Shown here piece after piece: positions 9,055 to 43,153 of a stretch of DNA of 64,000 bases. The position numbers and the translations under genes were made by a program. The first letter of the stretch is position 1; the number at the start of each line of letters is the position of its first letter. The stretch lies in the sequence record PQ451753.1; one strand, written 5' to 3'. The notes beneath the pieces were generated by a model that saw only the letters and a list, made by a program, of their open reading frames with translations, ran no database searches and was not told where the DNA came from.

Positions 9055-9314
9055 TCATGCACTATATTGAACTGGCATTAATCTTTGTACTCGCCTTAGT
9101 TATCTACTGGGAACTACTTGAACTTAAAGGTCAAGAATACGGCCCAGTCTTGACAGCATTACGTGTGCTGCCAGTTCTATTTATGCCTGTACTCGCGATG
9201 GCGTATCTTGGATGGTACGCCAATTCCAAAACTGAACGTAAGAAGTTTAAGATGCCAATTAACGTTGGCTTCTTCATTGTTATTGCAGCGTACTTCCTGT
9301 ACTACTTTTATTAG
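9051..9314 (+). CDS. Small multi-pass membrane protein
   Basis: 87 aa with 3 hydrophobic segments; ATGA overlap. Confidence 0.7.
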   Translation: MIMHYIELALIFVLALVIYWELLELKGQEYGPVLTALRVLPVLFMPVLAMAYLGWYANSKTERKKFKMPINVGFFIVIAAYFLYYFY

Positions 9315-9323
9315 GAGCTCATC

Positions 9324-9611
9324 ATGAAATATTTCAACCTCACCAGCGTCCCTGTAAGCGGCTATGAGATGGTTGCAGGTTTACCTAATGAACTAGGTGA
9401 CCGATTAACCGAATACCTCTCACGTGGCTTTGAGAAGGATGCTGTGAGCCTTTCAGTATTGATGGACAACGCAGGTATCAAAGGTTTTATCATTGACCCT
9501 ATTCATACGCCAGATACAACCAAACATATCTTACGTAAAGTAAGCCAACTACGCGGCAGCTGCGCAGCATTCTCAGTGAGTGCTGGTCAGTTGGTTCCCG
9601 CAACCCAGTAA
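9324..9611 (+). CDS. Hypothetical protein
   Basis: 95 aa, AGGAG RBS. Confidence 0.7.
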   Translation: MKYFNLTSVPVSGYEMVAGLPNELGDRLTEYLSRGFEKDAVSLSVLMDNAGIKGFIIDPIHTPDTTKHILRKVSQLRGSCAAFSVSAGQLVPATQ

Positions 9612-9627
9612 CGTGAGTGGTACTTTT

Positions 9628-9652
9628 GGGGGTCTTCGGACCCTCTTTTTTT
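9628..9652 (+). terminator. Intrinsic terminator
   Basis: GGGGGTC-TTCG-GACCCTC with C(UUCG)G loop and T7 tract. Confidence 0.85.
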
Positions 9653-9670
9653 GTGTCGGCAAATAAAACT

Positions 9671-10030
9671 ACAGGCGATGCTAGGAATTAACCTAGCAAC
9701 CTGTCGGACATATAATACCCTACTAAGGCAAATAAAAAAGGGGTTGTCGGTGAGTTTCCCCACCGACGATGCCAGACAACGAGTTACAAAATCAACCATA
9801 TGGAGAGCATGGCGTGCGGAGTGGGCTGCTGTTCGGTCAACCCACTCCACGGGACAAACGCCTCGTCTACATCACGTTAGGACCCACGTTTGAAACATAA
9901 CCGATAATCATAGGAGGTGCAGCGTTAACAGTTGGCTAAGTCACTGTACTGCAATATCGGATAGGCGATTGTCGTAAGGAATCTTTGGCTGGTTCGAACA
10001 GTCCCTTACAGAAGATATGACATTCAGTAA
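9671..10030. ncRNA. Candidate structured non-coding RNA (strand unresolved, minus slightly favoured)
   Basis: At least 6 hand-verified helices in an intergenic region; GAAA tetraloop hairpin plus U-tract on minus; T-loop-like hairpin; unpaired SD/anti-SD segment. Confidence 0.55.
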
Positions 10031-10039
10031 AAAATTACT

Positions 10040-11182
10040 TTATGTGGCTTGCTTCAATGATTGACGTGCTAGCATATTGACCGCAATAAGTGTGCGTACT
10101 AGTGATGCGCTGATGGCTGACTCAACCGAAACTGCGTTCTTAATGTCTTGCTTCAATTGTTTCACATTACCACGACCTTCCGCTTCAAACTTCGCTAGCT
10201 TATCTTGAGCTTTCTTAACTGAGGCTTGTTCTTTGTTGAACTTGTACGAGATATCGCTGGTTACCTCAACTAGCGATCGTAATGCAGGCATCAGTTTATT
10301 AGTATCGCTTGGAGTTAGCGTGATCGTATCAGATGTCTTCTCAACTAAAGGTGCTGCCCAACCCGTCTTGCGTGTACCCGTTGGAGTAATCGCAGTTGCT
10401 ATGTAAATGTTACCCGGCAATGCTTTAACCTGAGCGCGACTGTCTTTCTTAATAATGAGCGGCATGGCTTGTTGGATAGCTTGGTCAGCGACTCCACTAA
10501 TTGCAATACGTTCAAGCTTTGCAGTTGCCTCATCCCAGTTGTAAGTATCAAGCATGTAACCTTTAGCTGGATTGATTACAGCATAAAAGGCATCGGCTGC
10601 GTTAGTGATGTCACGACCGTTCTTACCAAGATCGAGGTGACGGGCAATATCAAACTTACTTGCAATATACAAGTAGCTGTATTCCATCTTACGCTTCAGT
10701 TCAAACGGGTGACCTGCGGCGTACTCCAGGTAATCTGCTTCGTTCTTCTCTAGCCACTTACGAGATTGTTCTGATATGTTGAACATCTTCTTAAATGACT
10801 TCCACATACCGCTGAGTTTCTCAGAGAACCAATTACCGATGTTACTCATCAGTCCTTCCATTGCAATATCAACTTCTTTGATAAAAGCAGTACGGGGACA
10901 AGAGGCGGATTCAAGACCTACAGATTCGGATAGGAACCAACGTGCTTTAATGTCATTAACGGCATAAAGCATACCAGTGTAATCTAGGTGTGATTCAGAC
11001 ACTTGTTCCATGGCGATCTTTTTCAGGTTGTCAAGTGTTTCTAAATCGTTAAACAGTTGTTCACCGTCGGCGTCTAAGGTTTGTTGTTGTTCGAATAAAC
11101 ACAATGCTTCCATTGCGACAGTTGTCATCTCATCGTGATCGTAGCCCCCGCCATCTGCATCGATCCATTTTTTAGTTTGCAT
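10040..11182 (-). CDS. Internal head protein (phiKZ gp93-97-like family)
   Basis: AME, GLE and AME sites in an acidic propeptide, followed by an amphipathic helix; GGGAGG RBS. Confidence 0.7.
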   Translation of the reverse strand: MQTKKWIDADGGGYDHDEMTTVAMEALCLFEQQQTLDADGEQLFNDLETLDNLKKIAMEQVSESHLDYTGMLYAVNDIKARWFLSESVGLESASCPRTAFIKEVDIAMEGLMSNIGNWFSEKLSGMWKSFKKMFNISEQSRKWLEKNEADYLEYAAGHPFELKRKMEYSYLYIASKFDIARHLDLGKNGRDITNAADAFYAVINPAKGYMLDTYNWDEATAKLERIAISGVADQAIQQAMPLIIKKDSRAQVKALPGNIYIATAITPTGTRKTGWAAPLVEKTSDTITLTPSDTNKLMPALRSLVEVTSDISYKFNKEQASVKKAQDKLAKFEAEGRGNVKQLKQDIKNAVSVESAISASLVRTLIAVNMLARQSLKQAT

Positions 11183-11189
11183 ACGAAAT

Positions 11190-12290
11190 CCTCCCTAGGG
11201 TTTATGCATACTATTCGATATTTCCCCCTTTAAGGTCCCCTCTTTCCTTTCCTTTTCTCTTTCCTTTTTCCCCTCTTTGGAAACACCCCTTTTACCTATC
11301 TCTTATCCTATCCTAACTCCCCCCTAAATCCCCCTTTTAGCGTCACTCCAGTCGCTTCGCTCCCAAGGAGTTCCTTGAATGCTGACATTAGATTAATGTC
11401 TCTATATTTTTTTACTGTACAAAAAGTGAACAGTTTTAAATTGAGTATAAAGTTTAAGAAAAATTTTAAGGTTTAATTAATCTAAATATAAAAGTATGTT
11501 TAATAGAAATAGAACTATTGATCCAAGAGATTGACTTGTTTCTCCGAGAGATTGTATGGGCGTGCGCCGCCCGACTCGTATAAGGAGATAAGTGATGATA
11601 CTGAAGTTTATAGCGATAGATGAAATCAATGCATTAAGGATGGCTAAGCAGCTGTTGCAGCGCGGCAGGAAAGTTGCTGTCTATAAGAGAATGGTGGTGT
11701 CTGAAATACAAGACAGTGAGAACGCATTCTTGCAATGCAAATACCGTGCGTATACGGAAACGATAACACCATGGGATTGGCGTTACTTTGAATCGAACAA
11801 TTTAATTTTTTGATCTAAATTAAGTGTTTTTCTAAGGTTAATGTTTTTTTCTACGGTTATACTCCTATTATATGTCTTACACAGCTTTTAGCTAGTGTGA
11901 GATCTAGAGGACAGGGCGAAGCCCTGCGTCGAAGGAAGACGGACGGAGACCGACCGGGGGCGGGAGACGACCGGAGGTAGAGATTCGAGGGAGCCCGGAG
12001 AGGCTCCCAGAGAAGTAGATAGATAAAGATAGATAAAAGAGAATAGAATAGGGAGAGAATCCAGGATGGATGGAAAGAAATGTGGAGCTTTAAAAAGTTT
12101 AGGATAAACTAGACTTTAAATAATCCTTTTTTTATTTGTTAAGGTTAAGTTATGAAATTAAATCTAATTTTAAAAAGTTTATTGATCGGCATTCCCGGAT
12201 TGAGTCCTTTGCCGCCCGCGCCACTGGTTACTTTTTATACAGAGGTGCATAGTGTACATAACTCGTAAATTTTTCTTTAAAGGCTTTTAG
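11190..12290. other. Candidate replication-origin / control region
   Basis: Mostly non-coding 1.1 kb: polypyrimidine tract left, polypurine tract right, AT-rich core, opposed GCGAAGC motifs, short direct repeats. Confidence 0.45.
11592..11813 (+). CDS. Small hypothetical protein
   Basis: AAGGAGAT RBS, 73 aa. Confidence 0.5.
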   Translation: MMILKFIAIDEINALRMAKQLLQRGRKVAVYKRMVVSEIQDSENAFLQCKYRAYTETITPWDWRYFESNNLIF

Positions 12291-13906: not shown

Positions 13907-13953
13907 GGTAGGGTTGATAGGTTCTTGCTTATCCTCCCTACCAACCTTTTTTT
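13907..13953 (+). terminator. Terminator/attenuator-like hairpin upstream of the nuclease gene
   Basis: GGTAGGG/CCCTACC stem, alternative GGTTG/CAACC pairing, T7 tract. Confidence 0.55.
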
Positions 13954-13972
13954 ATTTGTCTGAGGAAATATC

Positions 13973-23998: not shown

Positions 23999-25855
23999 AT
24001 GGCATTTAATACTGGCGAAAATAAGACTCACGACAAAGCGGCTAACACAGGTCGTAAAGACAACGAGAACAAAGGTCGTAAAGACGAAGGTCGTGGCGAT
24101 GCACGCGGTCGTCGCAACCTTGTATCTCGTGCATGGTCGCCTGGTTTGTCTGAGCAGGGTCGCAGTGCTGACTTCGTGAAGCGCGCGAAAGAGTTCCTTG
24201 AAGACCAAGGTAACAAGAACACAATCATCCTACAACCGGATAACGAGCTAGCTCGTGAACTGTCTGACTCATTCGGTTTCGTAATCTACGGTACTCACGT
24301 AGACACTGACCTAATGTGGCACCTATTGGTATTTGAATCTCAACTAACTCCAGTTGCAATGGAAGAGATCAAAGACCGTAGTCGTCGCTACTCTCGTGAC
24401 GAGAAAATCTACGACTTCGAAACAACTTCAGATGCAATCAGCGATGACCTAGTATCTGATATCGAAGAGTGGCTACGTCGCAACGTTGAAGTTGACGGTG
24501 AACTATTCTTCACTAACGCAACTGTAGTTCCAGTTGAAGTAGACCTAGAGTCTGATGCAGTAGTTCAGCTACTGGGCTTCGATGCAGAAGATTCTAACAT
24601 CCTGCTATCTGATACTGATGAGCCGTTCAGCTCTAAGATGCTAGCAGACCGTTCTGTACTGAAAGCGAAGTTGAACTTCACTTCACTTGACGACAAGCGT
24701 GACCTAACGTCAATGCCTCTACGTTCTGACCTACAAATCAGCATCTCTGAAAATCTACGTGACAACAAAGTCAGCATGATTCGTTCAGCAGGTGGTCAAC
24801 GTACGTTGGTAGAAATGGATGCTTACGTGAATGCCCGTTGGGTTGGTCACGATGAAGCAGACCGTGATGACGAAATCGATCCAGCATGCTACGTACCAGA
24901 AGTAGTAATGACTCAAAGCAACCCATACCACAACGATGTGTACGGCGGTAACTTCGAGCGTTTCTTCCTAGGTCTAGCTGCACTAATGTACACCAAAGAT
25001 GGTGACGTATGGATGAAAGGTTTCGAATCTTCTATCCACGGTGGTAGCAAAGTTTCTAGCCTTGCTTACGGCATGGACCCAGAAGTCTTCCCAGAAGGTA
25101 AAATCCCATCTGACATCGACATCGTTGATGAAGACCCAACTGAAACTGGTAACTGGCTACGTAAAATCTTCTTCCGTTCAGAACGCGGTCGCTCTATCCC
25201 AGTAGAGTTCGCGGTACTAATCAAAGAAGGTGGTATTGGCTACGCAACCAACAAGCTACTGCTTGACGTTGCAGATGACAACCCAGATGCACTTGAGAAG
25301 CTAATCAATGTACTGGACAACCTAACAGATGGTGTCTCTCAAGACTACCTAGACATCCGTGACTACACTGATGTTATCTCTGGTCAGGTTCGTGTACCAA
25401 TGGGTTACTTCAAAGATGCTGACGGTGAGCGCGCAGGTGAGTTCATCGATACTCAGTTCGTAATGGACCGTCTAAAAGACAACTACCCTGAGAAGCTAGA
25501 TGACTACTTCGAGTGTGTTCAGATTGATGATCGTGAATTCGACCACGAAGAAGCAATGACTAAACTACTGGATATCTACCAGCTAGTTACTGATGGTCAG
25601 TTCAAGCTTAAAGGCTTCGGTACTAAACTATACATTAACCCAGACTTCCTAGATGGTCTAGCTAAAGCTATCAAAGCTAAAGACGCTGGCCTGAACATGG
25701 AGCTTGAAGCTAATGTAGAAGTTAACTTCCGTCGCGGTCGTCGTTCACAAGGTCGTCGTGCATCAGCGGGTCTAGCGGATTCTCCACTAGGTCGTAACCG
25801 TCGTACTTACAGCGGTTCACGTCGTCGCGGTTCACGCACTAAGTACCGTCGTTAA
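23999..25855 (+). CDS. chmA: Chimallin, phage nuclear shell protein (phiKZ gp54-like)
   Basis: 618 aa with highly expressed codon bias; own early promoter and terminator; directly upstream of nvRNAP beta'-N; disordered N- and C-termini. Call rests mainly on synteny and size. Confidence 0.85.
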   Translation: MAFNTGENKTHDKAANTGRKDNENKGRKDEGRGDARGRRNLVSRAWSPGLSEQGRSADFVKRAKEFLEDQGNKNTIILQPDNELARELSDSFGFVIYGTHVDTDLMWHLLVFESQLTPVAMEEIKDRSRRYSRDEKIYDFETTSDAISDDLVSDIEEWLRRNVEVDGELFFTNATVVPVEVDLESDAVVQLLGFDAEDSNILLSDTDEPFSSKMLADRSVLKAKLNFTSLDDKRDLTSMPLRSDLQISISENLRDNKVSMIRSAGGQRTLVEMDAYVNARWVGHDEADRDDEIDPACYVPEVVMTQSNPYHNDVYGGNFERFFLGLAALMYTKDGDVWMKGFESSIHGGSKVSSLAYGMDPEVFPEGKIPSDIDIVDEDPTETGNWLRKIFFRSERGRSIPVEFAVLIKEGGIGYATNKLLLDVADDNPDALEKLINVLDNLTDGVSQDYLDIRDYTDVISGQVRVPMGYFKDADGERAGEFIDTQFVMDRLKDNYPEKLDDYFECVQIDDREFDHEEAMTKLLDIYQLVTDGQFKLKGFGTKLYINPDFLDGLAKAIKAKDAGLNMELEANVEVNFRRGRRSQGRRASAGLADSPLGRNRRTYSGSRRRGSRTKYRR

Positions 25856-42753: not shown

Positions 42754-43107
42754 ATGGTTCTTCCATCGAAATACTCTGCGATCAAAACACTTGATGAGTT
42801 TTTACATTTCGTGTTGAAAGCCTACCCGTCAGTAGAAGACGTCATCGATAAAATCGTAGATGGACAATCTGATGAGTACAAAGGCTTTCATCACTTCAGT
42901 GTGCTTGACCATGTCACGACTGTACATATCCGACAACAAGGTAAGATATGGCAGGTAAACCGTTCGTCTAACATCCGTAAGACAGCAGGTTACGAAAGAT
43001 ATGTAAAAGCACTCTGGGATGTAGAAGAGCTTCAGTATGATGAACGTATTGTAACGTACAAATGCTTCATTGATGAATGGCTGCCGTGGCAGACCATCCG
43101 ACTTTAA
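42754..43107 (+). CDS. Hypothetical protein
   Basis: 117-aa ORF ending before a terminator. Confidence 0.65.
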   Translation: MVLPSKYSAIKTLDEFLHFVLKAYPSVEDVIDKIVDGQSDEYKGFHHFSVLDHVTTVHIRQQGKIWQVNRSSNIRKTAGYERYVKALWDVEELQYDERIVTYKCFIDEWLPWQTIRL

Positions 43108-43113
43108 GCGGCA

Positions 43114-43153
43114 AATAAAAAGGAGGGCAAATGCCCTCCTCTTATTTTTTTTT
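43114..43153. terminator. Bidirectional terminator
   Basis: AGGAGGGCA-AA-TGCCCTCCT flanked by A- and T-tracts. Confidence 0.85.

Follow-up and report, generated by a model that had tools for sequence, protein, structure and literature searches.

The nine bases at positions 9911-9919 of a 64,000-nt stretch of sequence record PQ451753.1 (hereafter the window) are best read as carrying a pyrimidine core that an asymmetric internal loop exposes, within a structured minus-strand noncoding RNA that is predicted in a small clade of marine Vibrio jumbo phages. The RNA would be about 280 nt long, with a body spanning about 9730-10009, and appears to be independently terminated. The presence of a structured RNA at the motif is very likely, and because the minus strand is favoured, the reading in which the motif resembles the anti-Shine-Dalgarno (anti-SD) tail of 16S rRNA is the relevant one. 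We are highly confident in this structural part of the explanation. Our reading of the loop's function is more tentative: pairing of its core with purine tracts of other RNAs is a possibility that we consider about equally likely as a protein-binding or tertiary role.

Very few noncoding RNAs of lytic phages are known to us, and essentially none from nucleus-forming jumbo phages, in which transcription is physically separated from translation. A multi-domain, covariation-supported RNA exposing a motif complementary to the core of ribosome-binding sites (RBSs) would make a concrete candidate for a regulator that controls translation at the RNA level in infected cells. Were the loop to bind a protein instead, the RNA would still represent a new family with unusually long invariant loops.

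Genomic setting and relatives of the noncoding block

A DNA search of phage records showed the region 9300-10400 to be 100% identical to Vibrio phage pVp-JHP1101 (PQ451753.1, 230 kb) and returned a single relative, Vibrio phage pVa-21, with 87% identity across the first 744 bases of the region. The window encodes a nuclear-shell (chimallin-type) protein, split RNA polymerase beta-like subunits and a family B polymerase, which together identify pVp-JHP1101 as a nucleus-forming jumbo phage. The motif is located in the gap between gp207 (9324-9611, plus strand, 95 aa), a convergent neighbour closed by a strong terminator at 9628-9652, and gp209 (10040-11182, minus strand, 380 aa), which lies immediately upstream of the RNA on the same strand. 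The annotated ORF gp208 (9769-9900), upstream of the motif, is interrupted by a stop at codon 6 in pVa-21.

Searching with the gp207 protein yielded seven protein clusters, and every contig that has a gp207 relative and enough downstream sequence also has the noncoding block, whereas a more distant viral contig (L003) that retains relatives of gp203 to gp206 has neither gp207 nor the RNA. The conserved block covers about 9730-10038, with the minus strand favoured, and is found in relatives of five clades: the window phage with L033-L035 and L018 (the latter close to the window in this domain); pVa-21; L005-L012 with L029-L031 and L028; L016, L017 and L013; and L021. The effective sample is thus about five clades of a single phage group, with pairwise identities in the block of 61-89% and 138 of 334 alignment columns invariant among five lineages. 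No ORF is conserved on either strand of the block and the indels among relatives are not multiples of three, which excludes a coding function; judged from these patterns of sequence change, the block is noncoding and conserved.

Rfam 15 gave no match at the gathering score anywhere in the window, and a lax E-value over 9500-10150 returned only sub-threshold chance matches (E above 2). On this basis the RNA family is previously undescribed. ARAGORN detected no tRNA or tmRNA, and a literature search found no paper on an RNA of the block 9730-10038. Three exact-word scans of viral contigs for blocks of the RNA produced no matches, and a 19-nt degenerate word (two variants of the most conserved block) met only chance matches among metagenome and genome contigs, in agreement with nhmmer and covariance-model searches.

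The flanking elements are less constant than the block itself. The gp209 gene is present in the window, L033-L035, L016/L017 and L029-L031 and absent from pVa-21 and L005-L012, so the RNA is not merely the 3' UTR of gp209. These relatives are otherwise collinear, and the edge of the indel coincides exactly with the 5' edge of the conserved RNA block. On the other side, a 69-nt segment (9658-9726, not assigned to a strand) bounded by the 11-nt direct repeat GGCAAATAAAA reads as a sigma-70-like TTAACC-17-TATAAT promoter on the plus strand and as a second hairpin with a U-tail on the minus strand. It occurs in the window, pVa-21 and the L005 group and is missing from L016, L021, L018 and L013, and is therefore dispensable for the conserved RNA. 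For the same reason we set aside the sigma-70-like plus-strand promoter (9688-9716) that this segment contains.

Architecture, strand and ends of the predicted RNA

Single-sequence folds of five lineages predict the same order of elements on the minus strand: a 5' hairpin P1, a long-range helix P2 that encloses P3, an internal loop, P4, P5 and P6, then P7, P8, a single-stranded linker, and finally P9 followed by a U-tract. P1 (9974-10009) has nine outer pairs, one of which switches from A-U to G-C in the L005 lineage. P2 joins 9963-9973 with 9853-9863 and closes the P3-P6 domain; compensatory changes affect four of its eight counted pairs, and 95.8% of the cells are paired. Within this domain, P3 (9955-9960 with 9901-9906) encloses the internal loop, P4 and P5. 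Its two strands read CCGAUA/UAUCGG in the window, CCGGC/GCCGG in pVa-21, CUUAGC/GCUAAG in L005, CCGAC/GUCGG in L016 and L021, and CCGAUAU/AUAUCGG in L018, such that the sequence varies among lineages and complementarity is kept in all six. P3 forms in sub-region folds of five of these lineages and in the full-length fold of L005. Because both the MAFFT and the model-based alignments place it one base out of register, P3 was left out of the pair counts and read from the single-sequence folds instead.

P4 (9948-9953 with 9918-9923) likewise differs in sequence between lineages with its complementarity maintained, and two of its three counted pairs have changed on both sides. It is capped by the P5 hairpin (9928-9947), which presents a near-invariant loop on five pairs that alternate between G-U and A-U and are paired in 100% of cells. 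P6 (9865-9896) carries an invariant 8-nt loop, GGGUCCUA, on ten pairs (98.5% paired), with one A-U to G-C switch; this hairpin also has an invariant U-G pair that would be an A-C mismatch if the RNA were transcribed from the plus strand. The long hairpin P7 (9816-9850) comprises 14 pairs, five of them with changes on both sides and many with G-U cells. P8 (9795-9813), a small hairpin with a C-rich loop (CUCUCCA in the window), was assigned on weak evidence: single-sequence folding produces it for the window, pVa-21, L005 and L016, and its loop contains CUCC or CACC in five lineages and neither in L018, a loss for which we dropped P8 as a second conserved C-rich loop. The terminator-like P9 (9746-9767) has a GAAA loop of the GNRA type and nine pairs, two of them with compensatory changes.

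For the P2-P6 domain, the model-based alignment has standard pairs in 96.5% of 171 cells; seven pairs have changed on both sides, and none of 500 shuffles reached the covariation score. Sliding the partner strands as a control lowered pairing to 23-46%. Across the RNA, the pair counts support P2, P4, P6, P7 and P9 by compensatory changes. Four further single-stranded blocks, in loops and linkers, hold 9-14 invariant bases each; these are far more conserved than the CUCCU core of the internal loop described below and could be the real functional sites. An invariant GAACAG in the apical loop of P7 (9824-9829, minus strand) is complementary to an invariant CUGUUC inside P1 (9995-10000, minus strand). 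The two may form a kissing contact, for which covariation is uninformative as neither side varies.

All lines of evidence on the strand agree in favouring minus. When mirrored alignments were folded with RNAalifold, the minus strand reached -45.4 kcal/mol compared to -31.6 kcal/mol for the plus strand, and in five of five lineages tested the minus-strand fold had both the lower energy and the more negative z-score (in the window, -3.2 versus -0.8). The counted helices contain about 40 G-U cells, which would become A-C mismatches on the plus strand, versus about five A-C cells. Read from the minus strand, P9 has GAAA or GUAA as its loop; from the plus strand, the loop would be UUUC or UUAC. Taken together, the G-U and A-C cells, the fold energies, the GNRA hairpin with its U-tract and a motif at a fixed distance upstream point to an RNA that reads CACCUCCUA at the motif.

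The putative 3' end of this RNA is formed by a spacer, U-tract and tail (9727-9745, minus strand; UUUUUUAUUUGCC), in which 6 nt of spacer separate P9 from the U-tract. The same tail, a U-run followed by AUUUGYC, also occurs after gene-end hairpins near 13950 on the plus strand (13930-13965) and near 43110 on the minus strand (43105-43140), and a hairpin with U-run and AUUUGYC may be a phage-specific terminator signature.

On the 5' side, the last conserved block is a 14-nt motif at 10025-10038 (minus strand), GUAAUUUUUUACUG, which is kept in all lineages with at most one position changed and is separated from P1 by a spacer whose length is constant at 15 nt while its sequence varies. The middle-type promoters of PhiKZ, a phage of the same broad kind, contain TACT within a T/A-rich motif, located about 22 nt ahead of the start site (PMC8244752), and by likeness to these TACT-type promoters we take GUAAUUUUUUACUG to be a putative promoter element. 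A mirror copy of the motif is found at 11405-11417 on the plus strand. This copy and the one at 10025-10037 on the minus strand, each a T-run with ACTG, face outward at the inner edges of the noncoding island and look like a divergent promoter pair; in pVa-21, which has no gp209, they are only about 220 nt apart. As a general promoter word, TTTTTTACTG was rejected, since its eight sites in the window compare with 7.2 expected.

The predicted pyrimidine loop and its possible functions

The motif was originally picked out as a perfect SD sequence on the plus strand, TAGGAGGTG (9911-9919), without a start codon at usable spacing, and as a match to the 16S rRNA 3' tail on the minus strand, CACCUCCUA (9919-9911). 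We confirmed the lack of a suitable start codon: the only start-like codons nearby are a GTG at 9917-9919, which overlaps the motif and runs three codons to a stop, and a TTG at 9932, 14 nt downstream, with ten codons, and neither ORF is kept in relatives. That AGGAGG, a strong SD-like word, serves a real short plus-strand ORF is consequently hardly credible, as in no lineage is a start codon positioned 5-10 nt downstream, and the ORFs that GTG or TTG could open span 3-10 codons and differ between lineages.

In both the minimum-energy and the centroid fold of the minus strand, 9907-9917 (CCUCCUAUGAU) forms the long side of a 1x11 internal loop between P3 and P4, the 5' side being a single base in the window. 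This reproduces exactly the 11-nt one-sided bulge that had been proposed from a fold by hand. Folding the sub-region alone gave the same architecture in five of the six lineages, leaving 7-13 bases unpaired on the 3' side, and the full-length fold of L005 shows it as well. Within the long side lies CUCCU (9912-9916, minus strand; AGGAG on the plus strand), which is identical in all six lineages and has a mean predicted unpaired probability of 0.77-0.92 in every one of them. The proposal that the segment is displayed single-stranded is accordingly supported by prediction; the first two letters of the motif, CA (9919-9918), are paired in P4.

Conservation draws a narrower picture of the 16S likeness. 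CUCCU is preceded by C, U or A and followed, directly or after one base, by UG, and later bases vary. The motif region is CACCUCCU in both the window and pVa-21 and CAUCUCCU in L018; the L005 and L029 groups have UUUCUCCU, and L016 and L021 have GAACUCCU or AAACUCCU. The loop as it stands is CCUCCUAUGAU in the window, ACCUCCUGUGUUA in pVa-21, UCUCCUAUGA in L018, CUCCUGUGAAUG in the L005 and L029 groups, about ACUCCUUGA in L016 and about ACUCCUUGG in L021. CCUCC is therefore confined to the window phage and pVa-21, with UCUCC in its place in L018 and the L005 and L029 groups and ACUCC in L016 and L021. Over the loop and the adjoining helix strands, L018, the closest relative, shows three differences from the window, one of which breaks CCUCC. 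The perfect match to the 16S tail is thus borne out for two phages and absent elsewhere; only CUCCU is invariant. As regards conservation of the bulge, the internal loop with its predicted unpaired CUCCU extends to six lineages, and the full motif is lineage-specific. We conclude that the 8-nt match is probably a lineage-specific extension of the CUCCU core and not a conserved feature. As a word it is unremarkable, since the 8-mer AGGAGGTG/CACCTCCT occurs once in the 64-kb window against 1.21 expected, and at least once in 70 of 100 shuffles. What rises above chance is the setting, namely a covariation-supported noncoding block in which an invariant 5-nt core is predicted to be unpaired in six lineages.

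The first of the two readings that we favour is that the CUCCU loop serves as an intermolecular recognition site pairing with AGGAG-type purine tracts, a proposal that we hold tentatively, based on the conservation of the core and its predicted exposure. Its targets would be the SD cores of particular phage or host mRNAs, or a purine-rich RNA of the adjacent noncoding island, and the pairing would occlude selected ribosome-binding sites in the way that small RNAs with C/U-rich seeds do. Suitable cores are common in the window phage: GGAG is found at the ribosome-binding sites of 26-27 of 56 annotated genes and AGGAG at those of 13. Five invariant bases are nevertheless too few for target specificity, and pairing with ribosome-binding sites nearby is predicted to yield generic duplexes (-7 to -11 kcal/mol), none of which stands out consistently across lineages.

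A longer complementarity was noted elsewhere in the RNA. The linker CUCGUUGUCU (9774-9783), invariant in five lineages, is an exact 10-nt complement to the nuclear-shell mRNA at 24058-24067 (plus strand), corresponding to codons 20-23 or thereabouts, with five further pairs after a 2-nt gap. In pVa-21 the pairing includes a G-U wobble and in L018 the block has diverged, on account of which we set this match aside as probably due to chance.

Equally tentative is the reading in which the loop serves as a platform for protein binding or engages in a tertiary contact within a larger ribonucleoprotein or structured RNA, and its anti-SD likeness is incidental. The RNA is large and has several domains and four long invariant loop or linker blocks, and long invariant loops in large multi-domain RNAs are typical of action by shape or through protein partners. 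The strict co-occurrence of gp207 with the RNA and the brevity of the conserved element, just 5 nt and then UG after zero or one base in all lineages, are also consistent with such a role. Speaking against it, the two neighbouring proteins offer no candidate partner, as gp207 has no PHROG, Pfam or PDB sequence match and its structural model (pLDDT 83) no fold match better than E = 0.27, and gp209 has no family, phage or PDB sequence match. Inspection of the aligned sequences and folds revealed no conserved unpaired GGAG partner, nor any conserved complementary purine tract, within the RNA, and the loop matches no recognised internal-loop motif among those testable. The further possibility that CUCCU has stayed the same by phylogenetic inertia or chance in a constrained RNA, with no function of the motif itself, draws on the small and related sample, the high share of invariant columns and the chance frequency of the 8-mer. 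We regard it as unlikely, given that the bases next to CUCCU vary in every clade and that the flanking helices have completely turned over in sequence while the core stayed fixed and unpaired.

The original prediction had favoured more sweeping roles, beginning with a minus-strand RNA that mimics the 16S 3' tail and titrates AGGAGG sites globally, causing host shut-off or translational reprogramming. This is improbable. It is true that in the window phage and pVa-21 the loop presents CCUCCU, with only the first two of the eight matching bases paired in P4, and that phage genes favour GGAGA (14 of 56) over GGAGG (3 of 56). GGAGG/CCTCC is also depleted about two-fold over both strands of the window, with 27 occurrences versus 52 +/- 6 and at least 27 in every shuffle. 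The CCUCCU loop of the window phage would hence fit host-type AGGAGG better than the phage's own sites, and one could picture an abundant cytoplasmic phage RNA occupying host AGGAGG sites through a decoy loop from which the phage's GGAGA sites and GGAGG-depleted genome escape; if true, this would be an RNA-based way to reprogram translation, and we give the scenario only a slim chance. CCUCC is absent in three of the five clades, the near-identical L018 carries a substitution within it, and the UCUCCU of L005, L029 and L018 matches GGAGA best, so that discrimination between host and phage sites is not a conserved property. Moreover, the 5-nt core is too short and its predicted duplexes too generic for global masking, and global titration would need very high RNA abundance. 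The companion proposal, a plus-strand RNA whose AGGAGG and GGA motifs capture 30S subunits or CsrA, fares worse still and is very unlikely. The seven GGA triplets reported between 9800 and 9980 were counted as such on the plus strand, but only two, at 9880 in a hairpin loop and at 9913 in the internal loop, 33 nt apart, are conserved and unpaired in the mirror fold. The strand evidence favours minus, the promoter-like site at 9688-9716 that could drive such an RNA is lost with the 69-nt segment in four lineages, the strong terminator at 9628-9652 keeps gp207 transcription out of the block, which has no plus-strand terminator after it, and Rfam gave no match of the CsrB/Rsm type.

Known systems and the adjacent noncoding island

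With the 16S rRNA 3' tail, the RNA of the window phage and pVa-21 shares eight consecutive bases, six of them predicted to be single-stranded, and the invariant CUCCU is part of that tail. The phage motif differs in being located in an internal loop instead of at a 3' terminus and in the lack of conserved CCUCC in three of five clades, and the rest of the RNA matches no rRNA family in Rfam. An exposed pyrimidine motif complementary to the SD sequence is a principle known from bacterial small RNAs such as staphylococcal RNAIII and RsaE/RoxS, base-pairing RNAs whose exposed C/U-rich seeds occlude SD sites. These resemble the phage RNA in the display of an unpaired pyrimidine motif by helices, in the terminator-like hairpin with U-tail and in the SD core as complement. 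In contrast, the phage RNA is much larger and multi-domain, comes from a lytic jumbo phage that infects a gamma-proteobacterium, has a conserved core of only 5 nt, and shows no sequence or structure homology to them (no Rfam match).

Phage T4 offers a functional parallel in RegB, a nuclease that cuts GGAG in the SD sites of early mRNAs. Common to both would be a phage-encoded means of acting on GGAG-type ribosome-binding sites to control translation in time, and the likeness is one of function and not of family, since RegB is a protein enzyme that cuts whereas the phage RNA would pair. In PhiKZ, a single 75-nt small RNA was predicted and was not confirmed by northern blot (PMC8244752); nothing homologous to the Vibrio phage RNA is described in that study.

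A likeness to CsrB/RsmZ sponges exists only if the plus strand is read, which offers several GGA triplets with two of them conserved and unpaired. It is countered by the favoured minus strand, the conservation of just two of the seven triplets and the absence of an Rfam match. A better CsrB/RsmZ-like candidate lies at a distance of 2 kb, where GGA triplets cluster much more densely (11900-12110). The RNA is located in a 2.7-kb noncoding island beside this and other odd RNA-like features. The cluster itself is a purine-rich block (A 36%, G 36%) with 14 GGA in 211 nt, compared to 10 per kb in the window, and lies on the same strand as a pyrimidine-rich block at 11210-11350 (C 39%, U 40%, G 5%). 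About 600 nt separate the two, which lie on either side of the small ORF gp210, and corresponding blocks are found in L002 (3770-3900 and 4440-4650) and L006 (4950-5090 and 5420-5620). The duplex predicted between the pyrimidine and purine blocks reaches -84.6 kcal/mol. They might pair with each other as a long-range RNA duplex; alternatively, the purine block may represent a GGA-rich RNA of the sponge type.
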